From Podarcis tiliguerta (lineage: Eukaryota), in assembly GCA_965153285.1 (NCBI GenBank), contig OZ229122.1: a stretch of 64,000 nucleotides of DNA; one strand, given 5' to 3'. Below, piece by piece: positions 14,665 to 61,300 of this stretch (positions are counted from its first letter, which is position 1; each line of letters begins with the position of its first letter). The translations under genes and the position numbers were made by a program. The notes beneath the pieces were generated by a model. That model saw nothing but the letters and a program-made list of their open reading frames with translations. It did not search any database and was not told where the DNA came from.

Positions 14665-16988
14665 CAGTGGTAACTCTGTTTTTTTTTTTTTAATTGATAT
14701 TTATTAAGTTTTCATAGTATAATATAAACCAAACATAACACAGAAACAACAAGACAACAACAACAAAGATACAATAAAGAAAAAAAAAGAAAAAAAAACA
14801 CCTTAACACATAACAAAAAACTAACATATAATATAACAACGGTTAAAAACAACTTCACTTTTCAAAATAGATCTTGCATTAGCTTTTTCCTGGACTTCCC
14901 CGTACCTCCCTCCTTTGTATTCCATTTCCATTGTTCGATCAGCAAATCCTTTCCCTCTTTTACTTTCATCTCCCTTCTTATCTTAATATTTTGGCTTTAC
15001 CCTTCCCTCTCTTTTACACTATTTTTCCCATTTACTTCTTCGTTTTTTACAGAAAGCCCCTTAATCAAAATCCAACATCGTTCTAACATTCATTAATTTT
15101 ACAATATTTCTGTAAATAATCCTTAAATTTCTTCCAATCTTCTTCCACCTGATCTTCTCCCTGGTCTCGAATTCTGCCGGTCATTTCTGCCAGTTCCATG
15201 TAGTCTATCACCTTCATCTGCCATTCTTCCACGGTGGGTAGTTCTTGGGTCTTCCAATACTGCGCAATCAGCATTCTTGCTGCTGTTGTGGCATACATAA
15301 AAAAGGTTCTGTCCTTTCTTGGCACCAATTGGCCGACCATGCCCAGGAGAAAGGCCTCCGGTTTCTTGAGGAAAGTATATTTAAATACTTTTTTCATTTC
15401 ATTATAGATCATTTCCCAAAAGGCCTTAATCCTTGGGCACGTCCACCAAAGGTGAAAGAATGTACCTTCTGTTTCTTTACATTTCCAACATTTATTATCA
15501 GGCAACTTATAAATTTTTGCTAGCTTGACTGGTGTCATGTACCACCTGTATATCATTTTCATAATATTCTCTCTTAAGGCACTACATGCCGTGAATTTCA
15601 TACCGGTGGTCCATAACTGTTCCCAGTCAGCCATCATTATATTATGTCCAACATCCTGTGCCCATTTGATCATAGCAGATTTTACTGTTTCGTCCTGCGT
15701 ATTCCATTTCAACAGCAAGTTATACATTCTTGACAAAGTCTTAGTTTTGGACTCTAACAGTTCTGTTTCCAATTTTGATTTTTCCACCTGGAAGCCCACT
15801 TTCCTATCTAGTTTATATGCCTCCATTATTTGGTGATAGTGAAGCCAGTCATGCACTTTATTTTTTAGCTTCTCAAAACTCTGTATTTTCCATTTTTCTC
15901 CATCTTGTTCTAAAATCTCCCAATATTTCGGCCATTTGTCCTCCATATTAAGCTTTTTAAGGGCCTTCGCTTCCATTGGTGACAACCACCTTGGAGTTTT
16001 GCTCTCAAGTAGATCTTTATACCTTATCCAGACGTTAAACAATGCTTTCCTTACAATGTGGATCTTAAACATTCTATGCACTTTAACCTTCTCATACCAT
16101 AGATATGCATGCCAGCCAAAAGCATTATTAAACCCTTCTAAGTCCAAAATATCAGTATTTTCCAGAAGTAGCCATTCTTTCAGCCAGCAAAAAGCTGCTG
16201 ATTCATAGTAAATTTTCAGGTCTGGCAGGGCAAAGCCTCCTCTTTCTTTTGCATCTGTTAATATTTTAAATTTTATTCTTGGCTTTTTGCCCTGCCAGAC
16301 AAATCTGGAGATATCTTTCTGCCACTTCTTAAAGCAGTCCATTTTATCAATAATTTGCAGTGTTTGGAACAGAAATAACATTCTCGGCAATACATTCATT
16401 TTTATCACAGCAATACGACCTAACAATGATAGCTTCAGATTTGACCAGATTTCCAAATCCCTTTTCACCTCCGACCAGCATTTTTCATAATTATCTTTAA
16501 ACAGGTTCCCGTTCTTAGATGTCATATTAATCCCCAAATACTTCACCTTCTTAACCACAGTCAAACCTGTCTCCTTCTGAAACCTTTCTCTCTCCTTTTC
16601 AGTTAAATTTTTCTCCAGAACCTTTGTTTTTAATTTGTTTAATTTAAATCCTGCCACTTGACCAAATTCTTCAATCAGTTCTAAGACCCTTTTAGTACTA
16701 GTTTCTGGCTCCTGCAATGTCAATACAAGGTCATCTGCAAATGCTCTCAATTTATATTGTTTAGCTCCGTATGCAGTGGTAACTCTGGTTAAGAACTTAA
16801 TTCGTTCTGGAGGTGCGTTCTTAACCTGAAACTATTCTTAACCTGAGGTACCAATTTAGTTAATGGGGCCTCTCACTGCTGCAGTGTGATTTCTGTTCTC
16901 ATCCTGAGGTAAAGTTCTTAACCTGAGGTACTATTTCTGGGTTAGTGGAGTCTGTAACCTGAAGCGTCTGTAACCTGAGGTACCACTG
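14665..16988. mobile_element. Tc1/mariner MITE (CAGTGGTACCTC-type TIR) split by an L1 insertion
   Basis: Pieces 14665-14678 and 16788-16988 match the intact copy at 37025-37240; right end gaggtaccactg|TA. Confidence 0.85.
14679..16769 (-). mobile_element. 5'-truncated L1-clade LINE; ORF2 C-terminal part (15083-16750), 3'UTR and poly(A)
   Basis: 555-aa open frame with RT motif FADD, KYLG primer grip and C-terminal zinc knuckle CWKC...HLWWTC; AATAAA then A13 tail; identical 18-bp TSD TATGCAGTGGTAACTCTG at 14661-14678 and 16770-16787. Confidence 0.95.
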
Positions 16989-18011: not shown

Positions 18012-19429
18012 TCTACTCAGAAATTGCATACACCATATCATAATAAATAAAATAAATAAAATTCATTTTCGGAAGAAGTAGTAACAGAATTAAAACCTGA
18101 TTGGTATTACAATGGAAGCATTGAGAGACTCTAAATAGAAATATTAAGCACTAATCAATGACCCAGTGGCCAATTATTTCTACCTTTTAAAATAAAAATA
18201 TAAATAAAAGTTAAAAGTACAATGTCCATTCCATTTAGCATCATTGTCAAATAAATAGGTATTTATATCCTGCCTTTTCTAATTGTGTGGGGTGTTCAGT
18301 GCAGTTTACAGTTACAATGAAAGCACAACTACAGTGATGTGACAGAAAATCTAAACAGCTTCAAAAATAAATGCTTTGGAATGCTTCAGCTGAGCTTAGG
18401 CTCTTAGCCAAATTCCAGATATTTCTTTATCACCTCATGACATTTACAAGTCATATCATTCCAGCTGCCTTCTGTTGCAGAGGCTTGTAATGGAAGAATG
18501 TGAAGCTAGCAAGAGTTCTGGTCCAGTTTTGAAGGAAAAAACAGTTAGCATTGGTGGCGGACTAAAATCTGCAAGCAACTTTGTACCTCTCTAGCAAACT
18601 GCAAAGCGATTTTAAACAAAATACAAAATGGAATTCTGCACAGATCGATGACCCACGTTGGTGTAAAACAAATTCATTTAAATAACAAAAACAGTTTACA
18701 ATCATAAGTTAACATTTATTAAAAACCTCAGTAAAAACAAAACATCCTCTAGCATAGAATATTACAGGAATAAATCAGATAGCAAATGAGCAATTAATGC
18801 TTTGGTTTCTAGATACATCTCTCTGTCTAAAGCAGGAGTGGGGAAACATATGGCTCTCCAGAGGTTTTAATGGACTACAGCTCCCATCATCCCCGACTAT
18901 TGACTACAGTTGCTGGGGCTGATGGGAGCTGGAGTCCAGCAGCCTGTAACTGGCCACAGGTTCCCCATCAGTGGTGTGAAGGCAGGACCAGCCCTACCAT
19001 TCAACAGGGTGAAGTGGGTTGCTTCATGCAACTGCAAGGGCTGATGCACATATGTTTGTGTTAACTTTATTTTACGGCCCAGTACTACATGATTCACCAA
19101 GCAGCGGAGTCTAGCTGCCATTTTAGTTTCTTACAATACCGCCAACACGAGGATTGTGGGAAATTTAGATAGCAGCCCCTGGCCAAATCAGGGCTCCATT
19201 GATTATACAGCAACTGTTCATAGCAGTTTCAGAATTATCATCTACTGGTGCTGCTCCAACAATAGGTATGTGTGCTTATGGTTCATATTCAGTGTTACTT
19301 ATCTATAACAAGTACAAGAAGATGCACAGCCCAGCATGTACCCAGGAGACTGCCAGAGGTGGGAACTAGATACTCCTGTTGTTCACCCCCCTGCAGTTTG
19401 GTCCGACTACCAATAGCCAGTACTCTTAA

Positions 19430-19446
19430 TGTTTAAATATTAAACA
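19430..19446 (-). promoter_or_regulatory. G-CSF stem-loop destabilising element (SLDE) in CSF3 3'UTR
   Basis: Minus strand UGUUUAA-UAU-UUAAACA: perfect 7-bp stem with UAU triloop, matching the recalled mammalian G-CSF SLDE core. Confidence 0.8.
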
Positions 19447-19691
19447 GTGATTTAACATTGCATACATCTTGACATGTGCACCACAGCAAGGCTGTAAGTG
19501 TTGCAAGATGCACACGTAAAACTTGCTGAAACTCCCGTGCCTTTGATAAACAAAGGTTCTTATCAAACAGTTAATCTGACAGTTATCGGTATAAATATTA
19601 AATAAGTAATAAATACTCTTAATACCAGAGAAATGACTAAAGGTCTGAGGGCAAATTTTAAGATGCAGAACATTTGTTGTTTTTAAGAAAC

Positions 19692-19726
19692 AATAAATAA
19701 AAAAATAAAATAAATAAGCACAATAA
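19692..19726 (-). promoter_or_regulatory. AU-rich element cluster in CSF3 3'UTR (others at 18043-18060 and 20423-20438)
   Basis: UUAUUUAUU nonamers and AUUUA pentamers on the minus strand. Confidence 0.65.
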
Positions 19727-20603
19727 ATTAAAAACACGCAGTTGTAGGAATTGATTCTTAAGGATATTTCACTAGAAATCCAGCAAAGCAAACAAGATAT
19801 TTCCATACAAATGTCAAGTTGGCATCGCAGGATGAATACATTTCATTAAAAGCCGAATCCAAAATTGCAATTCTACGAAATGCTTGAGATGAGCCAATTC
19901 CAGAAGTAGCCAATGTCTTGGATTGACTTCAGTTCCCATCATCCCTGAGCATTGGTCATGCTAGCTGGGGCTGATGGGAACTGGAGTCCAACATCTGGAG
20001 GATAGCAATAGCTGGAGTTGTTGCAGGAGTCTCATGTCAACACTATGATAAAAACAACAACAACACCCGATTGCTAAAGATGTCCTGCATCAGTCTCTTA
20101 AAAAGGCTAGTTTAAAAAACCCCCCAAGGAATTTAGTTTGGCACAAACAGAAATGCTAAATGCCCAAACATGGAGAAGGCTGACCAATTAATTTGGAGAG
20201 ACATCAGAATGTGGGACTGTACTTGACTTTTGATCATAAAAAAGATAAAGATTAGTTCAGTTAGCAAGAGTCACTTCCTGCTGATAGCAGCAGAACACCA
20301 AACTGGGCACAGAGGGGCTTCTTAAAAACGATGCGTCTGGTGTTCTGCTGCTTCTTTAAATATTCTTGTGCCTTTTGTTTTTCTTGCTTTTGCATGATAA
20401 CAAACGGCTTTTAAAACTTTACAATAAATACAATAAATATATAATAAAAAGTTAGGAGGCTGGAATTCTGTAGGTTGGGAGGAGTCCAGGCAGAAGTAGT
20501 ACATCCTCTTGTTTCAGTTTGTTATCACCTATTAGGTCCTCCTTAGGATGCACAGGACCCTTCCACTCCAGGGTCTTATGGGAGAATCCTCTAGCCCTTC
20601 ACA

Positions 20604-20756
20604 TTATGAATAACAATGCCTCAATGCCCGGGCAATCGCTTCCATGAATTTCTCAAGGTTGCGGATGACAAGATAACTTCCAATAGCTCTCTGGTTTTGC
20701 AAGTCCAGGGTTTCTCCCTGGGGGAAGGTGACAGCGGTCACCACACTCTCAAGTAT
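20604..20756 (-). CDS. CSF3: CSF3 exon 5 (helix D)
   Basis: Acceptor tgcttcag|ATA; ...LEKFMEAIARALRHCYS, TAA at 20606-20604. Confidence 0.9.
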   Translation of the reverse strand: MLESVVTAVTFPQGETLDLQNQRAIGSYLVIRNLEKFMEAIARALRHCYS

Positions 20757-23158
20757 CTGAAGCAGGGAGATAGAAAGTGGGGTGGGAAGAAGAGAAATCG
20801 CATCCGTTATTGAAATGCAGCTGTTTACTAAGTGCTTAGAGGATCATTTTTTCTCGACAGCTGGATGGCCTAACTTGGTACCCTTTTGCACCTTGCAACC
20901 CCAGAGGTTAGAGAAGCTAAGAAGCTTTCTATAGAGAGATCAAACATTCCTTGAAATACAGAGTACCAGTCTTCGCAACATTAAATGTAGAGAACTCTAG
21001 ATCAGGGTGGGATTCCCATCAGCCTCAGCCAGCATGGCAAGCGGTCCAGGATAATGGGAATTGCATCTTCAGGGCTATAAAGCTCCCCATGCCTGCAAAT
21101 TGGGAACACTGAGAAGGGGAGAAGAACTGAAGTTCCTGGGGCTGTGTCTTAAGGAGGAGGGGATTATGGATCATCAATTTCCATGAGCAGGAATTACCCT
21201 AAACAATTACACCCTTTAACAATCATGTGTTCCTTGAAGAAAGGACACAATGACAGCTAGAGGTATTATTAATACCCTGACATGCTAATCAATATGTTCC
21301 AAAAGAAATCAAGAAGGAATGAGGCCAAGGGAAGCAGAGGGGATGAGCCGCCTGTCTCAGAAACAAGTCTTCATCTGCAGTTAGTCTTCCATATTCTGTC
21401 TCTGTGTTGCCCATGGAATTCAGTGGAACAGACACCGAGACAATAGCAGCCAAGACAAGCCATGCCAGAATAATGCATCTGGGTTGGTGCAACTGCAGCC
21501 AGCACTAGGGGCATCACCACTCTTCCAGGAGGGGAAGCAACTATGAAGTGCAGACAACAGACCCTGCTAAAATGGCTATGGATATTCCTGCTCCTTGCAA
21601 GCATGCAAGGGCTTCTTCTCACCTCCCGCCCACCTGTTCTGCCCCCTCCCTCAGCCCAAGCTGAGCAAGTAGTAAGCCAGCTTCTCACCTGCCGGTGGAT
21701 GTTGGTGGAGAGGTTTGAGAGGTCCAGCTGGAGGCCAGTCACTTTCTCAGAGAAACTTGGCAGGATCTGGGCAACGTGTGAGAGGCTGTGCTGGTAGGTG
21801 CTGAGGCCGGTCTGTATCTGGTTGAAGCAATCCTCCTGCAAGAACAAGATTTAAGGGTGGGGAAGAAGGGTTACAGCTTTTGTCTGGATAGATCTCTCTC
21901 GCTCGCACACACAACTTTTCCTGGTTCCCATTTAGGCTGGAGACCACCATTTTTCACATCCAGAGTGTAGACAGTATTTTAAAAAGGGGGCTTGTTTAAA
22001 TTATTTAGGACATTCATTCTCAGGGCAGTTAAGATACAGTCAATCCATTTTTGCAACTACAGAGCAAGATCATTACAGCAAGGCAGAAATGTGCTTCCAG
22101 GTACGCTGATGAGGATCTTTTATGGAACTACGATTCCCATGAACCAGAGCAAACACAGCCAATGGCCAGAGACAATGGGAGCTGTATTTCAGTAGGGACA
22201 CAAATTTCTTCACACCTGATGTGGATCACTGAAAGCAATGCCTCTCAAACCAGTTTAAACTCTTAAAACACTATACACAGCGACCCAATTTAGGGTGTGT
22301 TGTGAGTATAAGTAAAACCATGTGAGATGAGATATTACAAGTGGCTCAGTTTGATCATCTGTGGTGGAGAGAGAGAGCAGAAGAACAAATGAACAGTTCA
22401 AGTTGGTATAAAGGAGAAGGCTCAGTTTCTCCTGCCAGAGAACAAAGCGGAAAAAGGCTACAGGTTTAAATATTAACTTAAGATGGGAAAATTAAGAGGG
22501 TTCCTCAGAAGAAGTGGCAAGAGGAGAAAAAGTTTTCCCATAGTAGGCAAGCCAAGACATTGACATTCCTTACGCACAAAGGCATAGAGTCCAACATCTA
22601 TGTTATTGCTCAAGCTTTCGCCGAGCAGGTCGGCAGCAATAAGATTGTTAAGAAATATTTGCTGTGTGCTAAGAAAACATGAAGGGGATTTTTTCTCTCT
22701 GCATGCTCTTATCTTATTGGCTATTTGGTAATATTCCTCTCTTCTTGAGAAGTTGAATACACATGTTACAGAGGTGTGCCTGAAAATCCCCTGGAAAAGG
22801 GTACCCCCCTCACCAAACCTCATTTGAGCCCGTGATCAGCCTCAGAACTCATTTTGAGTGCTAGGAGGGGACCCAGGGAAGAGTATTTGGGTATTTGAGC
22901 GTGTATGGAGTCTTCTTCCTTTGCCACTGGTTAACTATAACCAAACTTTGTAATGAGTGGTCAGGGCTTCTAGATTAGATACATATTAGCCTCAGTGATT
23001 TTTAACAGCCAGCCTTAAAGTGTAATTTGTTTTAGTTTGCTGATTGCTACCAATTTCATAGTCCATGCTCAACTGAATGTGCATATGTAGTTCTAAAGAG
23101 AAAGCATGGATTGAGTATAAACAGAATCCATGTGGCACATAGGCATTCATTTTGGAAG

Positions 23159-23206
<48 letters not shown>

Positions 23207-26200
23207 CTAAGATTGCACCTATAACCAGTAATTTTATTGTGTGGGTGGCGAGGGAAGTCATTACTATAAGTCAGTAGCCCAGTGGAGAAAAAATGCTCCT
23301 AGTTGATTTGTAATAAAGTTGTCCAATATATCAGTGAACATACTGATGCTAGATATTCTGGTGCAGTGGGCTCTAATCCACAAAAGCTTGCGCCATTATA
23401 AATGCAGCGAAGCCATCGGGGCTGGACTTTGGGGGCAGAGGTCCAGTGCTACGCTCAGAATGAGAAGGAGCCCCCACCCTGGCAAAGCATCATGGCTAGC
23501 TTGCCATCTTAATACACATTGCCACCTAAAAAGCTTCCCCTCCACATAACAACCATTTTGTCCAAAATCAGTAAAGTACAGTGTATTTTAAGTGTGCCAT
23601 AAAACTCCCTTTACTGCTTCCAACAAACAGAGCTACCCCCTGGAGATCATAATGCTACAGTTTTTCACGTGGCTGTCCAGATGCCCCTGAGATTCTTTCC
23701 TCTTCTAAAGTTATGTTCCCACCAACCCCACCCTTTCGCAATCAGAAAAGGCAGATCCTTCTGTTTCTCATGAGCAAGCCCTTCTCTTAAGTACACAACT
23801 AATCTTATCCACTCAGAATCCTTTACTTTGCTGGCTCATTGCTTAACCTGCAAACGCGCCGAGTCACGATTGCAGCACCAGGGGAAATGGATGACATCTG
23901 GTTTGGTTACCAACAGGAATTCCCCCTTAACCCTCAAAAGTGTATTTTTGGCAGTCGGCCAGGCAACTACTACGTCAGGCGTGGACTGCCAATCTTAACC
24001 AAGATTTTGACATGAATGAAGGGTAAGGCATGCAAAACACATAGAATTATTGCCACAGACTCTGCTCATCCACACACACATCTCCTTGCATTGGAGGCAC
24101 AGTCAGGCATTTGCTGAAGGACCACACCCAAAACAAGGTGGGGGGCATTAGCAAGAGCCCCCTAGACCTATTGCAACGAGGAGGCAGGCTCACTCAAGGA
24201 TGGGGCTCACAGAGGGTGCAACAACCTCGCCATTGTCCATGTTATAGCTGTGCTATCATTTTGTCCCCCAAATGAAATGGCCTCAGCTCTCTAAGCATTT
24301 CCCTACAGCTTTATAGCTGAAAGAAAAATGGTGAAATGACAGACACTTGCTGTTTCTCATAGCGGGCATGAGAAATAAAGGTGGGAAGAAGCTGGAGGTG
24401 TGGAGCCTGGCAAGAAGTTTCCGAAGCTGGCAGGCAGGCAGGAAGCCGCTTGCTCACTTCTTTGAGGACCCAACACTCCTTTTGGTTCTGGCTTCCTTCC
24501 ACCTGTTGCTGCCTGCATTATTTGTAAACAGATATTGCAAAGCTCCCTCCCCCCCTTACTGAATTGTTGATTTTCCACCTGGAACTTTCTGGGGTGGTGG
24601 GAGCGGGTGGGAAATATAATTGCACGTTAACAGGAATGGGAAATATAACTACTTAGGGCTTGTTACTGGACAGTGGCTTCCACTCACCTTGTTACAGAGG
24701 TCTTTCCGACAATGGGAATAATCAACTTGCTCGATGCGCAGGATTTCCTGCACTAGTTGAAGTTCGTTGTCACTGCCAAGCCTGAATTCTTTACGCTGTG
24801 GGCAGCAGGCGGAGGGAGAAACAAGGAGTTGAGGTCAGAAGAGACAAAGGCCCCAGTAGCCAATATAGATATATAGCTTGCTTGCTCCCTACTGGCAAAC
24901 CCATGAGCTCCCACCACCTGTATATTTTTACAATATTTTAAAAAGGTATTGTTGACACTACCAGGAAGGCAAGGGCTCCCCAATACTTGCTGCCCACCAC
25001 CCAGCCTTGCAGTTTGTAAGAGTACAGAAACTTTACTCATTCTGTTAATGCAAGACCTTGTCTCTGTCCTGCCCTCACAATAACCTAATCTGCCCTGTTA
25101 TTTAGTGCCTTCACTTGAATAAGGAGTCCATAGTAAAGGACTACATGTCAATAGACAGATCCACATCTATGGGATCACTTGGAATGCAGCAGTAAATTAT
25201 CTCATAGAATAAAGGGAGGTGTGAATTCTATAGGAACGCTACAATAGTGCATAGCAGTTATGAGTGCAGCATTTGCAAACCACCAAGTTTCCAGTCCTTA
25301 TGATAGGAAGCCAAGTTATGCTCTCGAGTGCATGACCTCTGAGAGGAAGAGACTGATGAATACCATTTCTAGTGTTTGGAAAGAGACCTGCAGAAACCTC
25401 TGCCTTTTTTCATAACAAAATTGGAGTAAATGATGCCACACTGAAACTACTGAAAGCACCAACACGCAAATATCACACACCCAAAACCCAAACCAAAAAA
25501 TCTGATTCTAGCTAAAGGGTGGCAGTCTGAGCAGCAAATACTGGCATTCATCATAGCATGATTTTTCTTCCGGTTTACGTTAGGCTTGGATAAGAGGAGG
25601 ATTAAATGCATTTTTACGTTAATTTGACAGATCTAGTCAAACTAGCGCCTCCGCCCTCTGAGGGAAGCCAACGAGAATGCCAAAGCTTTATTCACAGTCT
25701 GCAAACAATTTTTCTCCTTTTGTCACTGAGGGAAGGTGACCTTTCCAGGTTGGCACAACCTCACAAATGCTGGGAAAGGTAAGATCAATGCCATTTGTTC
25801 AGATTAAATGGGGCCAGGGCTGGGAGAGACTTCCACAACGCTAGAAGGGAGAAAGCTATGCTCTCTATGAGGTTAAGTCTTCGGGGCAAGCTGCAATTTC
25901 AAGGAAATGCCGGGAACGGAGTCCCATACCAGAACAACTTGCCAACTATTTTGTTTATCCGAGAACTCAGCTCAATGGGAATAAGTTATTTGTACTGGAG
26001 TTTACAGTGGTTCAAAGCCAAGAGCTGCAAAATAATAACTGTCAGGGCACAATCACTTTCCAAGTTGTTATGTTACTGGGGAGGTGTGTTATATACAGGA
26101 TAAATTAGGCAGTTTTTCAGGACTGGGCTCCACCTTTTGCTCAAACCCGTCCTGGCACAATATTTGGGGAGGATCATCAGTCGATATTTGTACTTTTGAG

Positions 26201-29154
26201 ATTCTCAGAGGCAGTTTCAAGGAGTTGACACATTTTTAAAAGGTGGGTTAATAAGGGATATAATACGGAGAACTGGAATCGGTCCTTCAGGATTTCTCAA
26301 GAAGTTTTTTATATCATTGACCAAGGCATCCCTTTTAGATAGCTGCCTAAATCCACAGCTTCTGCCAGTGTATAAACTGTGGGTTTAGGCTTTGATCGTG
26401 AGCAGCCCTATCCAACCTGTTGGCTTCTGAGTATTGTTTGGCTACAGAACCCATCACCCCTGACCACGCTTGGATGGGGCTGATGGGAGTTGTAGTTCCA
26501 AAACACCCGGAGGGCACCAAGTTGAAAAAGGCTGCTCTAGACAAACTGTACACCTTCATCTCTGCAATATTCCTTGCCCAGCATTTTCCTCTTCTGCTCG
26601 CAACAACTCACCAGATCATTCTTCATTTTAGCAACATCCTTCCTAATCCTAAGCACAAATTCCAAATTGTCGAGGATGGAGTCTGGGTACCCGGAAGTCT
26701 CTGGCAGGGGTGTAGCTGAGCACATCAACCCCCACAGTGCAATGCTGATCAGGGGGAAAATAACACCTGGAGGAGGAAGAGAGAGAATGAATGAGGTCAT
26801 ATAGTCAGTGGAACAATGGAAGAATAGTTTCACTGATATAAATTAATCCAGCACTAGTATCACTGGCTCCATGAGGTTGTACAAGAGAACTTCCCAGTGG
26901 GCTGCATCCTGCAGGTCAGATCTCCCATGCTCCCACTCCCACTTTTAAGGGCATTTCATCTTCCTACATGACAGGAAGGAATACCTTTCAAACAAGTTCA
27001 GGGAAAACATGATTTAGAAACATGTGGTTTTTTTTTCAAAAAATATAAACACACACTCATTTTCCATCTTTAATCCAAGAATCACTCACCCACTTTCAGT
27101 TACAAAACTGGGGAACTAGATGTACTACTCATCTCAGAGCCATAGCTACAGGGAGGATGGGAGGCTGTGCCAACCTGGCCCTCAGAGAAGTTCCAAGCCC
27201 CTCTGGCCTGAATTTTAATCAATAATAAGAGACACAAAGGGAAAGGCTTTTGCTGGCTGGCCTAGCGTGATACAGCAAGTATTCTGCCCACTATAGGTTG
27301 AGATTATTAAAACGCAAACCTACATTCTATTTTAACTGGAGTTCGGTCCCCAAAGGGCTGGTCCACACTAGGCTAGGAGGAGAGGGAGAAGTCCTGTACA
27401 GTATTTAGATCATAGAATTGTAGAGCTGGAGGGGACCACCAGGGTCATCTAGTCCAACCCCATGCAACGCAGGAATCTTTTGCCCAATGTGGGGCTCGCA
27501 CCCACAACCCCGAAATCAAGTGTCTCATGCTCTACCGGCTGATTACGCACAAATGGGAGACGGGTGTAATGGAAGGGATCTTGTTCCTTTGGAGGGATCT
27601 CCCCTCGGTCACGTTTATCTTCCGGCAGGCGGAGGAAGTAGCGAGAGCACTCCCGCTTCCACGTGTTGCTGCCGGGCCGCAGCGGATAATTTTGCTGATT
27701 TTTTTGTTCTCCCTTCTCGCAGTAAGTCATCTCCTTGCTCAGCCCTTTTTGGCGGCTTTTTATTTTTTGCAAATAAATTCATTAGTGGGGGAGGCGGGGC
27801 TGGCAATTCGCGCATACACTAGTTATTTTCTCAAATAAGAAGCCGCCCCATGGAGAAGTCTTAAATCACCCTCTCCACACATTTAGGATGCGTGGGGGGG
27901 GAAATCCAAAAGTCCCTACTCGAGCGTAAAACAGAACTGGGGCGCGTTAAGGGTTGGAGATGGGAAAAGAGTCGGGGGGACCCCACCCAGAGGATCAAAC
28001 TATCTCTTATACACATCCCGATTCCGAAGTTTCTGGCCCGCCGCCCTTTGGTTTAAAAAGCGGCGTGGGAGCGGGAGCCGCCGAGACGCGCCTGCGCGCG
28101 GGGCGTGGTTTCGGCTCGATTGGGTGGCCCGTGGCAAATCACTTTTTAGCTAATAGAGGCGGCGGACTTCAGGCTTGCGAGGGTGAGGAGGGGTGTGTGT
28201 CCCCTTGTGTTTTCAATAAGTAGACCCGCTAATCTGAGCCGGGTGGAAAAGAAAGCACCTTGAGAATTTAACTCTCACCCCTGGAAGTTGTTTCGAGTAC
28301 CAAAACTAAACCGCGCTCGCAGGCCTCCACGCAAAGACCCAGCTCTGCAATGCACTTTAGGGTGGAGTTTTGCTGCCGTCGTTTGTTTGCTAAAGTAACC
28401 CGGAGTGAATCCTGGCCGGTTTTTATTGCAACCTGCCGGGAGATCAAGATCTCCACCCGCAGACTTGAAAGTAAATTAGAAAGCAAATCCAAGTCGCCGA
28501 AAAGGAGTGTGGAGATCAGGGAATCATGCGGCAGGCAGTTCCAGAGGTTAACGCTGTTCAGCCTTTCCTAAAAGTCACAGGGACCTCTTGTGAAACTTAA
28601 AAAGTGTCTCCTTCGAGCTCGTTTGAGGAACGATACAAAATATAACCAAGAATAACTTTTGAAAGAACTTGGCTTTTCTTCTGGAGCCCGTGGCTGGGAG
28701 GCTGGGAAATCTGAGCGAAAGAGTTGTCTCCCTGCCCCTTTAAGACTAAAAACAGGAATCAGCCCCTTGCTCAGAGAAAAGACCTAAACAAACGAACAAG
28801 CCCAAGGTTTATTAGCCTTCAAAAATCTCTCCAAGCTGGTTTTACCTTAACCACTTTAAACCTAACAGCCCACCATCCTTTCCATAAGAAAATCTGCTAT
28901 TTTGGGCGTAACGCATAGTTGGAAGAGAACTCTTCTGCTAAACCCGAGACTCTTTCTCCTTTCCCATCCGCCGCCCCACAAATGTATGAAACAGGCTTTC
29001 AGCAGGGAGTAGGTAAATAGATTTACCCTCCTTATAAATAACAAAATCCAGCTGCGCTTGCCCCAAAGCATGCAACTTACCAGCTCGCTCGACCTCTGCG
29101 CCAGGCGCCTAGAACGGGCTGACCAAAGTTCTACTTACTTCGTTCTGAGCTCAT
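20604..29154 (-). CDS. CSF3: Granulocyte colony-stimulating factor (G-CSF / myelomonocytic growth factor-like), 5 exons, about 192 aa
   Basis: MSSERS/VIFPLISIALWGLMCSA^TPLPETSGYPDSILDNLEFVLRIRKDVAKMKNDL/RKEFRLGSDNELQLVQEILRIEQVDYSHCRKDLCNK/EDCFNQIQTGLSTYQHSLSHVAQILPSFSEKVTGLQLDLSNLSTNIHRQ/ILESVVTAVTFPQGETLDLQNQRAIGSYLVIRNLEKFMEAIARALRHCYS*; exon 3 = 108 nt and exon 4 = 147 nt as in CSF3; intron phases 1,0,0,0; position between PSMD3 and MED24. Confidence 0.92.
21689..21835 (-). CDS. CSF3: CSF3 exon 4 (147 nt, helices B-C)
   Basis: cttgcag|GAG...CAG|gtgaga; CFNQIQTGLSTY...LQLDLSNLSTNI resembles the IL-6/G-CSF family signature. Confidence 0.94.
23161..23202. repeat. (GT)n microsatellite in CSF3 intron 3
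   Basis: About 21 GT units. Confidence 0.95.
24688..24795 (-). CDS. CSF3: CSF3 exon 3 (108 nt, AB loop)
   Basis: gcccacag|CGT...AAG|gtgagt; 36 codons, E46/L47 and C64 equivalents conserved. Confidence 0.88.
26612..26766 (-). CDS. CSF3: CSF3 exon 2 (signal peptide and helix A)
   Basis: cctccag|GT...CTG|gtgagt; hydrophobic signal then TPL mature start and NLEFVLRIRKD. Confidence 0.92.
27408..27545 (-). mobile_element. Short SINE with tRNA-Lys(CTT)-derived head and CR1-like tail
   Basis: Minus strand TCAGCCGGTAGAGCATGAGAC...GGGTGCGAGCCCCACATTGGGC followed by GGGTTGGACTAGATGACC...CTACAATTCTATG; degenerate copy at about 53768-53880. Confidence 0.7.
27560..28520. other. CpG-rich island in CSF3 intron 1
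   Basis: Visibly high CG-dinucleotide density compared with the CpG-depleted flanks. Confidence 0.6.
29139..29154 (-). CDS. CSF3: CSF3 exon 1 coding part (ATG AGC TCA GAA CGA A)
   Basis: aggATGa context, perfect GTAAGT donor giving the required phase 1, about 185 nt downstream of a TATA box. Confidence 0.7.
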
Positions 29155-32739: not shown

Positions 32740-34711
32740 TAATCGAGAGCACGACCTTGGGCTGATGAGTTGGAGTGAAAGCACACCCCGGCTTCTGCAA
32801 CTGGCCTCAGGATCAAAGGCCACTATGAGGCTGGATCCCCAAATTCCCAGGAGGAGCATTGCTGGAAGGGGAAGACCAAAAGGAGAAAAGGAGCCGCTGA
32901 TGAGAGCTTGGTCTCTTGTCCCTGTCAAAAAGAACACTTGGAGCAGTCACAATTTTACTGTATTACAGGAAATTCTTAATAAAAAATCTTTTTAAAAAGG
33001 AAGAACACTTGGTGCTAGATGCCAGTTCCCTTGAACTGCAGCAGAAGCAAGAGGAAAGGGTGGAGGGAAAGCCATAAACTGCTATTCAAGCAAGAACAGA
33101 CATGGGATTCACTGTAGGAAAGATTTTTGCACCCCACTTTGCACGTTAACCACAGAACTGGGGAAAATCAGGGGTGTAGGTCTTGTATGACACATTGCTG
33201 TAGGCTGCACTTTTTTTGGGTGGGGGTTTCCAAATATTACTCTTACCTTGATATAAGTGGGTGTCAGGACAAATTGGCCCAAATGTCTCAAAACCAGCCC
33301 TGCTTATAGGGCATACTATTCTGTCTTGCAGAGTCACCTTCTCTTGATGCTTTTGTGCAGATGGATGGCAAGAGGTCTTTGCTTAATGGCCATTGATAGC
33401 TGGTGGCTACTGCACTGGGATTTGTATGGACACTGCATCATCCACTTATGCAGAGCTGGGTAAACACATAAAGGACGAGCCCAAGGTCTGTAGCTGGCTG
33501 GTTGGAAGCAGCCGTGGGAAAGGGAAGCAAATGGAAAAATGATTGCTTTTGGAATTAATACTGCTTTAGGACTGGCTCTTTAGACTGCCTGAGTGTCTGC
33601 TGTCTCCTCACTGCTCAACTTACTTATTTGTAGCTAAACAATCTCACCCTCTACCCCACAAAGCACCAGAAGTCGCAGTAACGTTTTTCAGTGGGTGCTG
33701 ATACTGGAAAACCTTCCCCTGCAACCTTGCACCGTTATACAGTGCTTTTAAATTGTCTACTTTCAGGAATAAAACACAGGTGTCGTGAAAGAGCAACAAA
33801 TGTTTGGTTGTTTCATCATCATCATCATCATCATCATCATTATTTTATTTTACTCTCAGAGGAAGGGAGAGGTGGGTTTTGGTTTTTTGCCTCAGGTGCC
33901 GAACTATATTGCCTGGTCTTGGATGCGACACACCCTGACTTGGGGAGCAATTCCTGCTTCGCCTCAGGCGGCAAAATGTCTTGAACCAGCTCTGAGGAAA
34001 CTTTTTCTGCATCACATGAGAAAATAGGGAGCCTGGCATGTGGGAAAGGATCCATTTCCTTGGGTATTGTTATGTATTGAAGTTCTCACCCTGGCCACCA
34101 GGGGTATCGTGTATATAGTTTTCACTCAGGTCCACATCAGTCAATTTAGGCGGGAAACAGTGTTACAGTGTTGATAGCCGGCTGCCTATAAAAACAGGCT
34201 GGCCGAGCTGTTTGCTGTTCAGTTCAGTTCAGTTCCAGCTTACTTATAAAGAACTACTTGGAGAAATCTCTGTGTCGTCTGCTATGTCCACCCACTATTT
34301 AATAGGTACAGGCCCCCTTGGGCCTCCTGAAACATTGCAAGGGAATGGTAGGGGGCGTCAGAAGTGCCCTACTGGGTCAGACCAAAGGCACACCTAGTCC
34401 CGCGTCCTATTCTCACAGTGACGAACCCCACAACTCAGGAAAGTCTACAAGAAGGATATGAGCACAATGGCCCTATTCCCACTTTGGATTTCCATCAACT
34501 GGTATTCAGAGGCCTGCTGCCTTTGACATTGGAGATAGTATCAAGATCAACCTTCTCAGGACCCCATTTCTGGAATGTCCTCCCTAGTGAGGTGTGTCTG
34601 TCTCCCTCATTACGGACTTTCAGGAAGAATTTAAAAACATCCCTGTTCACGCAGGCATTTGACGGCTGAAAGATACTGATCCTGGGAACTATGAAAATAT
34701 TTGGGCTGGGA

Positions 34712-35479
34712 GAACAGGGAGAAATGTAAAGTATTGCACTTGGGCAAAAAAAATGAGAGGCACAAATACAAGATGGGTGACACCTGGCTTGAGAGCAGTA
34801 CATGTGAAAAGGATCTAGGAGTCTTGGTTGACCACAAACTTGACATGAGCCAACAGTGTGACGCGGCAGCTAAAAAAGGCAATGCAATTCTGGGCTGCAT
34901 CAATAGGAGTATAGCATCTAGATCAAGGGAAGTAATAGTGCCACTGTATTCTGCTCTGGTCAGACCTCACCTGGAGTACTGTGTCCAGTTCTGGGCACCG
35001 CAGTTCAAGAAGGACACTGACAAACTGGAACGTGTCCAGAGGAGGGCAACCAAAATGGTCAAAGGCCTGGAAACGATGCCTTATGAGGAACGGCTAAGGA
35101 AGCTGGGCATGTTTAGCCTGGAGAAAAGGAGGTTAAGGGGTGATATGATAGCCATGTTCAAAGATATAAAAGGATGTCACATAGAGGAGGGAGAAAGGTT
35201 GTTTTCTGCTGCTCCAGAGAAGCGGACATGGAGCAATGGATCCAAACTACAAGAAAGAAGATTCCACCTAAACATTAGGAAGAACTTCCTGACAGTAAGA
35301 GCTGTTCAACAGTAGAATTTGCTGCCAAGGAGTGTGGTGGAGTCTCCTTCTTTGGAGGTCTTTAAGCAGAGGCTTGACAACCATATGACCATATGTCAGG
35401 AGTGCTCTGATGGTGTTTCCTGCTTGGCAGGGGGTTGGACTCGATGGCCCTTGTGGTCTCTTCTAACTCTATGATTCTA
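34712..35479 (+). mobile_element. CR1 LINE 3' fragment
   Basis: KCKVLHLG...EKDLGV...RPHLEYCVQFW...LEKRRLRGD motifs; ends in the ctatgattct CR1 tail. Confidence 0.95.
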
Positions 35480-38821: not shown

Positions 38822-39153
38822 NNNNNNNNNNNNNNNNNNNNNNNNNNNNNNNNNNNNNNNNNNNNNNNNNNNNNNNNNNNNNNNNNNNNNNNNNNNNNNN
38901 NNNNNNNNNNNNNNNNNNNNNNNNNNNNNNNNNNNNNNNNNNNNNNNNNNNNNNNNNNNNNNNNNNNNNNNNNNNNNNNNNNNNNNNNNNNNNNNNNNNN
39001 NNNNNNNNNNNNNNNNNNNNNNNNNNNNNNNNNNNNNNNNNNNNNNNNNNNNNNNNNNNNNNNNNNNNNNNNNNNNNNNNNNNNNNNNNNNNNNNNNNNN
39101 NNNNNNNNNNNNNNNNNNNNNNNNNNNNNNNNNNNNNNNNNNNNNNNNNNNNN
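38822..39153. other. Assembly gap (332 N)
   Basis: Run of N. Confidence 1.
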
Positions 39154-48144: not shown

Positions 48145-58397
<10,253 letters not shown>

Positions 58398-61300
58398 GGC
58401 TTCACCTTCCACACACACACACCGGCTACGGCCGTGACTGAGCAACTATCGCGGAGGACGACGGGAAAAGCCGAGCAGGCTCGACGAGCCGATCGCCGAA
58501 CGCGGACGAATGGATTGATTCCTCGCTCCCTGTCCCCACCCCCGTCTCCATGGTAGGGAACCATAGAGAGAGAAAGGCGGGCTGCGACGCCACGCTTCGG
58601 CTTCCGGGTTGCGCCTCTTCCTTTTTTTCCTTTCCCCTGCCGAGAGGGAAGCGCCTCAAAGCGGGTGGAGGGACGGAGGGGGCAGTCCGGCAGCCAGGCA
58701 AGCAAGCGGGAGGGGCGGTGGAAAGGGCCTTCGAACTGAAACAGTAATACATTTTTAAATTACTGATTTAAGTTATATACCGCCCTTTATTAAAAGATCC
58801 CAGGGCGGTTTACAATATTCCTAACGGGTGTGTGGAAATAAGAACCAGAAGAATCTTTATTTGCATCAGCCACTAGCCATGGCAATAAAGTAAAATAAAA
58901 TGTACTGAAGATAGAGGTAAAAACTTAAAATATAGAAAATACGTTTTGGTGGTTTACAGCAATAATCAAATAATAGATCTTTTTCCAAACTGCCTCCGCT
59001 AAAAACCTTGCAGTGAGAGAGAGAGAATATGAAAACCTTCCTTTGTGGGGCAAATAATAACAAGCCCCAAAACAATGGATTCATTAACGTTGAAATCCTA
59101 TGCATACTTGCTCCTTTGTAAGTAACAGGATTGCAGCCTCGCATTGCAGCATTTTAAATATTTTTTTAAAAAAATTAATCGTTCTACATTTTAAAAAAAC
59201 ATTGTTTTACAAAAGGGTGCTGAATGTCGTGCTGCATACGTAATTGTGCATGGCTTTTTATATATATATATAAAAAGAACCGTTTATTCAGGGAGGAGTT
59301 GAGGATCCTCCCTGCATCAGAAGGCATGGAGAGCAAAGGTGGCAGCAGTAACTCGGGAATCTGCCAGCAAACTTCCCGGCCTTGCATTTGCAGCTGGGCC
59401 ACTCAGCGTGCTTCTCTTCTTTTCCTTTCCCTGGTCTTTGGGTTGGGGACTACATTTCTCCCTCAGCAGGCTAAGATCAGTGCTGAAGCAGGGCCAAGTA
59501 TAGTATCCAACTCGGGAGAAGGATGCTTTTGAAATACTGTATGAACTCTTACAGCTAAGCAGATGTAATAGCTCGTCTCTTAAACTGCAGGCCATAAATA
59601 TTCTGTCTTTTGCTCCTCAGTCAAAATAGGAAACCAATGAAGTAAGTAGGTATAATAGGACAGAAACAGTAGACTTGCTCAATTAATTCATTTAAAACAG
59701 AGCCAGTCTATTTTATTGTAAATACAGAATTGCTCCCATTCTCCTGCTGTCATGTGCTTTCTTCATGATGAACCAAACACATACTCATCTGTCTCCCATC
59801 TTTTCTGTAACCTCCACCTGTCAGCTTTGTTCTACACCCCTCTACAGCTTGTAAAATTATTGTAATACTATCCTCTGTTGTCTGCTATTAGTATTTATTA
59901 AAGTTGCATAAGAACATCAATAACCCACCCCTGCATTATACAAAAACCCTTCCTATCTAAAATAACCACCCCAATAAATAACATTAAAAACTATCAGCAG
60001 CAGGAATATGTTATTTGTATGGAAGGACACATACAGGAGTAGGAAATCATTAAGCTACCCAGGTCCCAAGCTGTTTGAGGATTTAAAGGTAAAGACCAGC
60101 ATCTTGATTTGAGCCACGGACATGAACCAATGCTGATCAAATAGGACCAGTCACATGATCTGCCTGGTGCATCATAGAAGGTTTGAAATGCAGTGATGGG
60201 TACATTTCCATTGTACCAACACTAGAGGGTGCTCAAGGAAATTATTAATACAGTCACAGTACAACAAAAATAAATTCTTTTATCAACTATTAGTTTTCAC
60301 TGCTATAAATTTAAGATTCTGATTTTTAACTTAAATGTCAGGATCCTTTCACTAATGGAATTCTCATACCAGATTTTCAATATTTTCAAGTTCCTTAACT
60401 TCCATTTCCAGATATTCATTCAAAAATTATTAGAAGAACTCATCTAAACCTCTCCCACCCATTCCTATTATTTAGTTTCAGATTGTAATTTCTCCCAAGC
60501 ATATACTTTTAGTCTTTAAAGGGTATTCTCACCGCCCTGACATGTTATTTATTCCTTTACTCTTCAGTATTTGCTGCTACACTTCTCACATAAACCCAAA
60601 AGAAAGGACCTATGTTCATTAGAGCTGTACCACAAACAGCCACCAGATGGATGACACCTTTTAAGTACCACTCTTCAGATGTCTGCTGAGCATCTGCCAC
60701 TGATGAAGGGCAAGGTTGCTTAAGCCAATCCCAGGTTCGTTCCTGTCTGTGCTTCACCTCATTGGCTAAGATTGGCAAAGCCAGGGAAATAGGTGGATAG
60801 AAGATCAGTAGCATTACAATGAGCCGAGACAGATCAGGGCTGCCATTTTTTGTGGTAGTAGCTCCCTATCATGGGTATCAAGTTCCACCCACAGTACTGA
60901 AGTGTGGATTAAAAATTGAGTAAACGTATTGATGTTTGAAGCAGTTTGGCAATGGGACCAATTACCTAGAGGGGTGGCTGGCTGTCCGGTCTTTAGGCAG
61001 AGACTGGATAGCCATCTGTTGAGGAAGTTCCAGCTTCAGGCCACACTTCTGATTCTGTATGGATAAAGATAAAAATACCTGTAGGTGCTAAACAGGATTG
61101 ATCTTGCTGCTGAGAACCTGTAGCGTAATTTTTGCTATGCCAGAGTTAAGGTTGCAGTGAAAATTCTGGACGAAAGTGAAATATGGCGTACCTGTGCCAT
61201 TTGCAAAAAAGGATTGGATTTTATGTGTATGCTGCTTTGAAAATTAACTTTGTTTATTATTCTGCCCTTCACCTGAGAATCTCAGGGCGATTTACAGCAT

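Follow-up and report, generated by a model that had tools for sequence, protein, structure and literature searches.

A 64,000-nucleotide stretch of DNA from the lizard Podarcis tiliguerta (NCBI GenBank assembly GCA_965153285.1, contig OZ229122.1; the whole stretch is called the window below) carries CSF3, the gene for the cytokine G-CSF, and the cysteines of the encoded protein are arranged in a way that points to an exchanged disulfide bridge. Mammalian G-CSF is held together by two disulfides, Cys36-Cys42 and Cys64-Cys74 (PMC7710547). We put a probability of roughly 0.72 on the following reading: the window holds a single, syntenic, expressed CSF3 orthologue whose product has lost the Cys36-Cys42 bridge, has kept Cys64-Cys74, and has most likely gained a new disulfide between residues 69 and 171, on the squamate stem or earlier in Lepidosauria. 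Positions are numbered as in human G-CSF where equivalents are compared, and as in the lizard precursor where codons are located.

The codons on which this reading turns are as follows:

24793..24795, minus strand: Arg58 of the precursor (CGT), where human G-CSF has Cys36; a single base separates it from a Cys codon; first codon of exon 3
24775..24777, minus strand: Gly64 of the precursor (GGC), where human G-CSF has Cys42; again a single base away from Cys; seventh codon of exon 3
24709..24711, minus strand: Cys86 (TGT), human Cys64 equivalent, kept
24694..24696, minus strand: Cys91 (TGT), new, where human G-CSF has Leu69; helix B starts two residues further on
21827..21829, minus strand: Cys96 (TGC), human Cys74 equivalent, kept
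20613..20615, minus strand: Cys190 (TGT), new, where human G-CSF has Leu171; final turn of helix D (RHCYS)

The initial annotation had described this arrangement from the letters of the DNA, and rereading the codons together with alignments A1 and A2 bears it out: Arg and Gly, with the codons CGT and GGC, stand exactly where it had put them, the Cys64 and Cys74 equivalents are found at 24711-24709 and 21829-21827, and the coordinates of the new cysteines at the Leu69 (24696-24694) and Leu171 (20615-20613) equivalents are exact. Its count of four cysteines in the mature protein also holds: the fifth, Cys21, falls in the signal peptide, at position -3 of the putative cleavage site CSA/TPLPE, which we place by homology with what we take to be the human sequence, VQEA/TPLGP. 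Three of the four mature cysteines (Cys86, Cys91 and Cys96) lie within 11 residues, with C-x4-C-x4-C spacing.

Distribution of the cysteine pattern

The pattern was followed in alignments A1 and A2 as well as in a broader local alignment, with counts made on full-length entries; the other non-squamate entries are fragments or intron read-through predictions. The squamate entries come from four gecko genera, the skinks Tiliqua and Lerista, lacertids, the worm lizard Rhineura, Varanus, Pogona and four snake genera, spanning Gekkota, Scincoidea, Lacertoidea, Anguimorpha, Iguania and Serpentes. C64, C69, C74 and C171 are present, and C42 is absent, in 26 of the 27 full-length squamate entries; all of C36, C42, C64, F69, C74 and L171 are found in 88/88 full-length entries from birds, turtles and crocodilians. 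At the two sites of gain, mammals have Leu69 and Leu171 (Phe171 in the dog); in birds, turtles and crocodilians the residues are Phe and Leu. The loss of C36/C42 and the gain of C69/C171, whose joint occurrence across species the initial annotation had proposed as a test, are found together in each of the sampled squamate lineages and in no bird, turtle or crocodilian. The pattern is a squamate-wide trait and not a peculiarity of one lizard. Squamate CSF3 forms one clade in the gene tree (100/99 support), and across 17 squamate lineages 39/169 mature columns are invariant, all four cysteines among them.

IL-6 carries two homologous bridges. Since mammalian G-CSF and IL-6 share both bridges, and birds, turtles and crocodilians keep C36 and C42, the squamate state is derived. 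No tuatara G-CSF is among the matches listed in the protein-database searches (one of which gave the best 120 of 160), so that the switch is dated to the squamate stem or earlier in Lepidosauria and no more finely. The sole squamate exception, Hemicordylus capensis (P0144), has Y69 and W171, keeps C64 and C74, and carries an extra, odd Cys in the motif KDCGL after helix C. To judge from its residues, this lizard would represent a second, independent event in which both new cysteines were lost jointly.

Several squamates depart from the common pattern in other ways. Three colubroid and elapid snake sequences (P0137, P0139 and P0142) have a fifth Cys within helix D (VLCKLQ), and two skink-like transcript contigs (P0002 and P0042) have five cysteines, with a Cys regained at position 36 and none at 42. 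Zootoca vivipara has three CSF3 copies (P0001, P0024 and P0025), two on one scaffold and one on another, and Lerista edwardsae has two (P0032 and P0034); these duplicates are lineage-specific, and all of them have the squamate cysteine pattern.

Acidic residues contribute receptor contacts in G-CSF: E19, D109 and D112 at site II and E46 at site III. The equivalents of E19, D27, E46 and D109, which the initial annotation had listed as kept, are all present in the lizard sequence alignment, and D112 is replaced by Asn. This Asn opens an N-L-S glycosylation sequon (21734-21726, precursor residues 134-136) in place of the human D112 contact residue; all three of its residues are invariant in the aligned squamates, turtles, crocodilians and birds.

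Gene model, expression and orthology

CSF3 lies on the minus strand in five coding exons, which, when joined, give 192 codons and a 579-nt open reading frame (ORF) without interruption; all four introns are GT-AG, and the gene is single copy within the window. The initial annotation had given the span as 20604-24795, which holds exons 3-5 and omits exon 2 (26766-26612) and exon 1 (29154-29139). The parts of the gene are:

29139..29154, minus strand: coding part of exon 1 (16 nt), with the ATG, MSSER and the first base of Ser6; GTAAGT donor, phase 1
26612..26766, minus strand: exon 2, remaining signal peptide (with Cys21) and helix A; E19 and D27 equivalents present, Cys17 equivalent lacking
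24688..24795, minus strand: exon 3, 36 codons corresponding to human residues 36-71; CAG acceptor, GTGAGT donor
21689..21835, minus strand: exon 4, 49 codons, helices B and C; Cys96, D109 equivalent and the N-L-S sequon
20604..20756, minus strand: coding part of exon 5, 50 codons and TAA; CD loop and helix D
18895..20603, minus strand: 3' untranslated region, about 1.7 kb; extent approximate, from the length of a spliced X1 contig

The N-terminus encoded by exon 1 is that of the Podarcis lilfordi and Lacerta agilis proteins P0037 and P0039 (MSSERSVI). The splicing of the remaining exons can be read from X1, a set of contigs from a run of a related species, 90-95% alike, whose label as RNA is a guess, though a likely one; the contigs behave as spliced mRNA. 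The joint 20756>21689 (exons 4-5) is present in a 2,011-nt contig and the joint 21835>24688 (exons 3-4) in a second, whose loose end at 24796 corresponds to exon 2 at its 3' end, reverse-complemented. Because the X1 contigs carry them, exon junctions 2-3, 3-4 and 4-5 are used exactly as the gene model has them. Exon 3 has three differences in the X1 and DNA runs, all of them silent. An X1 contig extends 1505 nt past window position 20400, which is the basis for the 3' end given above.

Sequence searches were queried with single exons or with database proteins, and the fold was predicted from the database protein P0037; the joined translation of the lizard exons entered the local alignment, the gene tree and the pattern checks. 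Exon 4 matches the Pfam family GCSF PF16647 (E 2.4e-6, 27.9 bits), just below the whole-protein cutoff of 30.4, and the near-identical full-length proteins P0023 and P0037 carry precomputed matches to PF16647 and to PF00489 (IL6/GCSF/MGF). Against human, bovine and canine G-CSF chains in the PDB, exon 4 aligns without gaps and with its Cys on C74, which fixes exon 3 as human residues 36-71; exon 5 aligns to canine G-CSF, its Cys falling just after the conserved Arg-His, at human L171. Pfam searches with exon 5 and with the ORF around exon 2 gave no match. The initial annotation had described exon 3 as a gapless 36-codon match to its CSF3 counterpart. The gapless register is established through bird and turtle sequences (alignment A1); exon 3, about 22% identical to human, has no G-CSF match when used by itself in a PDB sequence search. 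Its chance matches there and in Pfam, to N-acetylneuraminate lyase (PDB, E 0.4) and to CD59 (below the Pfam cutoff), were set aside.

The pattern C-x9-C-x6-G-L-x2-[FY]-x3-L around Cys64 and Cys74, which we take to be a signature of G-CSF/MGF, is matched by regular expression at precursor residues 86-111. With exon 4 as the phmmer query, a set of 1.84 billion representatives yielded a Zootoca protein (85% identity) and, after it, further G-CSFs from reptiles and birds. The closest proteins overall are annotated as G-CSF or MGF in Podarcis muralis, P. lilfordi, P. raffonei and Lacerta agilis, with 94-98% identity among the 192-residue entries: P. lilfordi P0037 differs from the window protein at 3 residues of 192, P. 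muralis P0023 (XP_028559913.2) at 4 and L. agilis P0039 at 12. In the gene tree, the window protein groups with the Podarcis sequences.

Upstream of CSF3, on the same strand, lies PSMD3, recognised by its TPR_PSMD3_N domain (PF25573 at 55993-55523, E 4.8e-14). Its N-terminal coding pieces occupy 55523-58445 on the minus strand, with the start ORF at 58445-58005. As CSF3 is, to our understanding, downstream of PSMD3 on human chromosome 17 as well, the lizard gene is the syntenic CSF3 orthologue. We likewise presume that human CSF3 has five exons and a 36-codon exon 3. By profile, signature, gene structure, synteny and predicted fold, the lizard gene is an ordinary member of the G-CSF/MGF family. 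The one textbook G-CSF feature that it fails is the Cys36-Cys42 bridge, and orthology rests on the other criteria.

Repeats lie in and around the gene. Downstream of CSF3 is the reverse-transcriptase ORF of a long interspersed nuclear element (PF00078; 582 codons without a stop; 15086-16831, minus strand), and between CSF3 and PSMD3 is a CR1-like ORF (34695-35312, plus strand) with no Pfam match. Intron 3 contains a (CA)n microsatellite at 23153-23212, and in each of the DNA runs depth spikes and numerous loose ends mark two pieces of short interspersed repeats at 21014-21057 and 22148-22194 (introns 3 and 4). The letters at 38822-39153 are a run of 332 N.

Probable pairing of the new cysteines

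The AlphaFold2 model of P. lilfordi P0037, three residues away from the window protein, has a predicted template modelling score (pTM) of 0.70. The 14 top-ranked Foldseek matches to this model are all G-CSF (E 2e-7 to 4e-5), with 1PGR, 1CD9, 2D9Q, 1BGC and 1RHG at the top, and IL-6 comes next. Against G-CSF crystal chains, template modelling scores (TM-scores) are 0.67-0.72 when normalised by model length and 0.78-0.87 by chain length; the nuclear magnetic resonance (NMR) entry 1GNC gives lower values, 0.61/0.66.

In the model, helix B begins two residues after Cys91, and Cys190 belongs to the final turn of helix D. These places are those of human L69 and L171, human helix B spanning 71-91 and helix D 143-172 (PMC7710547). 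Up-up-down-down topology has helix B begin at that end of the bundle where helix D finishes. NMR of human G-CSF brings the same regions together: L61-Q70 of loop AB clusters with the C-terminus (Q173), and the C-terminal part of helix D (V163, R166 and H170) is proximal to S62 and G73 of loop AB (PMC9449972). The opening of loop AB has been tied to the aggregation of human G-CSF (PMC9449972).

The two new cysteines are most likely bonded to each other, and several features of the protein suggest this pairing. A secreted protein whose four cysteines are invariant would be expected to have two bridges, and the 64/74 signature is intact; Hemicordylus dropped both new cysteines yet kept 64 and 74; the outgroup residues are hydrophobic (Phe/Leu69 and Leu171), as fits a packed contact that a disulfide could replace; and the positions of the cysteines in the model, with the bundle topology and the human NMR data, would bring the two regions together. 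A bridge from the AB loop to helix D also has a precedent in growth hormone: in human growth hormone (hGH) it closes an unthreaded 112-residue loop (PMC4063663).

The proposed course of events can be put briefly. The small Cys36-Cys42 bridge, which sits at the junction of helix A and the AB loop beside receptor site III, was lost, and the Cys64-Cys74 bridge retained. Cysteines replaced a conserved hydrophobic pair: Phe/Leu69, where the AB loop ends, and Leu171, in helix D's final turn. An intramolecular Cys69-Cys171 disulfide would then enclose about 100 residues and fasten the AB loop, by its C-terminal half, to helix D at its C-terminus, acting as a stabilising staple that may make up for the lost bridge. 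The 2:2 receptor complex of G-CSF presumably leaves the surface of the site-1 type, formed by helix D and the AB loop, unused, and for this reason a 69-171 bond should leave binding unblocked. In the IL-6 family at large, site 1 is made of helix D and the C-terminal AB loop (PMC10022904).

Two other fates of the new cysteines have to be weighed against this pairing. With three N-terminal cysteines in 11 residues, each near the same end of the bundle, the bonds might be shuffled into Cys64-Cys69 with Cys74-Cys171, or Cys69-Cys74 with Cys64-Cys171, leaving an ancestral Cys to make the link to helix D. We regard such shuffling as improbable: that Hemicordylus lost just the two new cysteines is simplest if 64 pairs with 74 and 69 with 171, and the C64/C74 signature, presumed as above and here with Tyr at its variable position (C-x9-C-x6-G-L-x2-Y-x3-L), is intact. 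Alternatively, the new cysteines may not pair with each other at all, and be free thiols, or Cys171 may form an intermolecular bridge in a covalent dimer or with another protein. Human G-CSF tolerates its free Cys17, several squamates carry an odd fifth Cys, and human L171 is predicted to be solvent-accessible (PMC7710547). Two permanent free thiols would nevertheless be unusual for a secreted protein, both positions are invariant in the 17 squamate lineages and were lost jointly in Hemicordylus, and the conserved hydrophobic residues of the outgroups fit a packed contact better than an exposed handle; there is, we think, little chance that the cysteines remain unpaired with each other.

A more radical doubt concerns the gene itself: an exon could have been modelled wrongly, or the gene could be a pseudogene or a divergent paralogue, and the true canonical G-CSF would then lie elsewhere. 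Squamate CSF3 does duplicate (three copies in Zootoca, two in Lerista), and exon 3 alone has no significant match to mammalian G-CSF. Yet the duplicates are confined to single lineages and show the new pattern too, transcript-like contigs contain the exon 2-3-4-5 junctions, the ORF is intact with canonical splice sites, and the synteny with PSMD3 is kept. No squamate protein with the canonical cysteine pattern is among the matches listed in the protein-database searches, and nowhere in the 64-kb window does a turtle G-CSF query match a canonical exon 3. An alternative exon 3 retaining CxxxxxC, named in the initial annotation as what would overturn its proposal, was looked for and is absent from the introns and the window, and the spliced X1 contigs use the exon 3 of the gene model. 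The only CxxxxxC strings in the CSF3 introns, four in number, are unlike G-CSF and provide no alternative exon 3. An artefact is thus highly improbable, and already largely refuted.

Some observations weigh against the exchange of one bridge for another. The two bridges of human G-CSF have been described as critical for its structure and activity (PMC7710547), and compensation for the lost one by the new one is assumed. Loss and gain share one stem branch, so that their co-occurrence counts as a single event (n = 1). Hemicordylus, with its odd extra Cys, sits on the longest branch of the tree (0.53), and its G-CSF may be a copy under relaxed constraint and thus not a clean test. Finally, a fifth Cys occurs in colubroid and elapid snakes, in one Lerista copy and in a skink-like transcript, and odd cysteines thus appear to be tolerated in squamate G-CSF.

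Relation to other cytokines and significance

The lizard gene shares most of its features with mammalian CSF3 and avian MGF: five exons with a 36-codon exon 3, a location downstream of PSMD3, a predicted long-chain four-helix fold, the Cys64-Cys74 pair with its flanking signature, and the acidic residues E19, D27, E46 and D109. Unlike both, it has Arg and Gly in place of Cys36-Cys42, lacks Cys17, and has Cys at 69 and 171. Teleost G-CSF paralogues resemble squamate G-CSF in that the four canonical tetrapod cysteines are not conserved (PMC6389648), so that variation in the disulfides of this cytokine among vertebrates is already known. Their divergence is general, with no compensating pair described (PMC6389648), whereas squamates swap exactly one pair and keep the rest.

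The proposed bond has closer parallels outside the family. The hGH Cys53-Cys165 bridge and the long-range disulfide of LIF likewise tie the AB loop to helix D and close unthreaded loops of about 100-126 residues (PMC4063663). These proteins belong to different families, the positions are non-homologous, and the bond is ancestral there and would be a lineage-specific gain here; the putative lizard bond also differs in its anchor points, which are the extreme end of the AB loop and the final turn of helix D. In leptin, Cys96-Cys146 (the pierced lasso bundle) anchors the C-terminal end of helix D to a loop, as proposed for the lizard, but the partner belongs to the CD loop, and the loop of 50 residues is threaded; the analogy with hGH leads one to expect an unthreaded 69-171 loop in the lizard.

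In the literature on CSF3 in reptiles and on G-CSF, lizards and disulfides the squamate pattern is not described, most subscription journals being outside this coverage; a comparative CSF3 paper does not discuss squamate cysteines (PMC7717901). The pattern is real and clade-wide and has apparently gone unremarked, even as the proteins are already public under G-CSF and MGF names. For annotation, this means that the missing Cys36 and Cys42 in squamate CSF3 models are real and not prediction errors.

It is plausible, by analogy with human G-CSF, that the staple stabilises the contact between loop AB and helix D and that the site-III end becomes freer, because the lost bridge adjoins site III and NMR links the opening of loop AB to aggregation. 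If so, the staple would act where opening of human G-CSF exposes the aggregation-prone helix D. The idea can be carried further, if only tentatively and at rather long odds: the bridge exchange could be a squamate or lepidosaur synapomorphy with functional consequences, a template for an aggregation-resistant scaffold, and a change matched by changes in the Ig domain of the receptor. For protein design, the new bond, if it exists, would suggest pinning the loop-AB/helix-D region implicated in G-CSF aggregation.

G-CSF is a widely used and much-studied therapeutic cytokine, and reviews treat both of its disulfides as essential. Squamates number more than 10,000 species. Throughout its crown history, a whole vertebrate order appears to have relied on a framework of another kind, with one ancestral bridge and one new long-range bridge, and would thus provide a natural experiment on the exchange of disulfide frameworks in helical cytokines.

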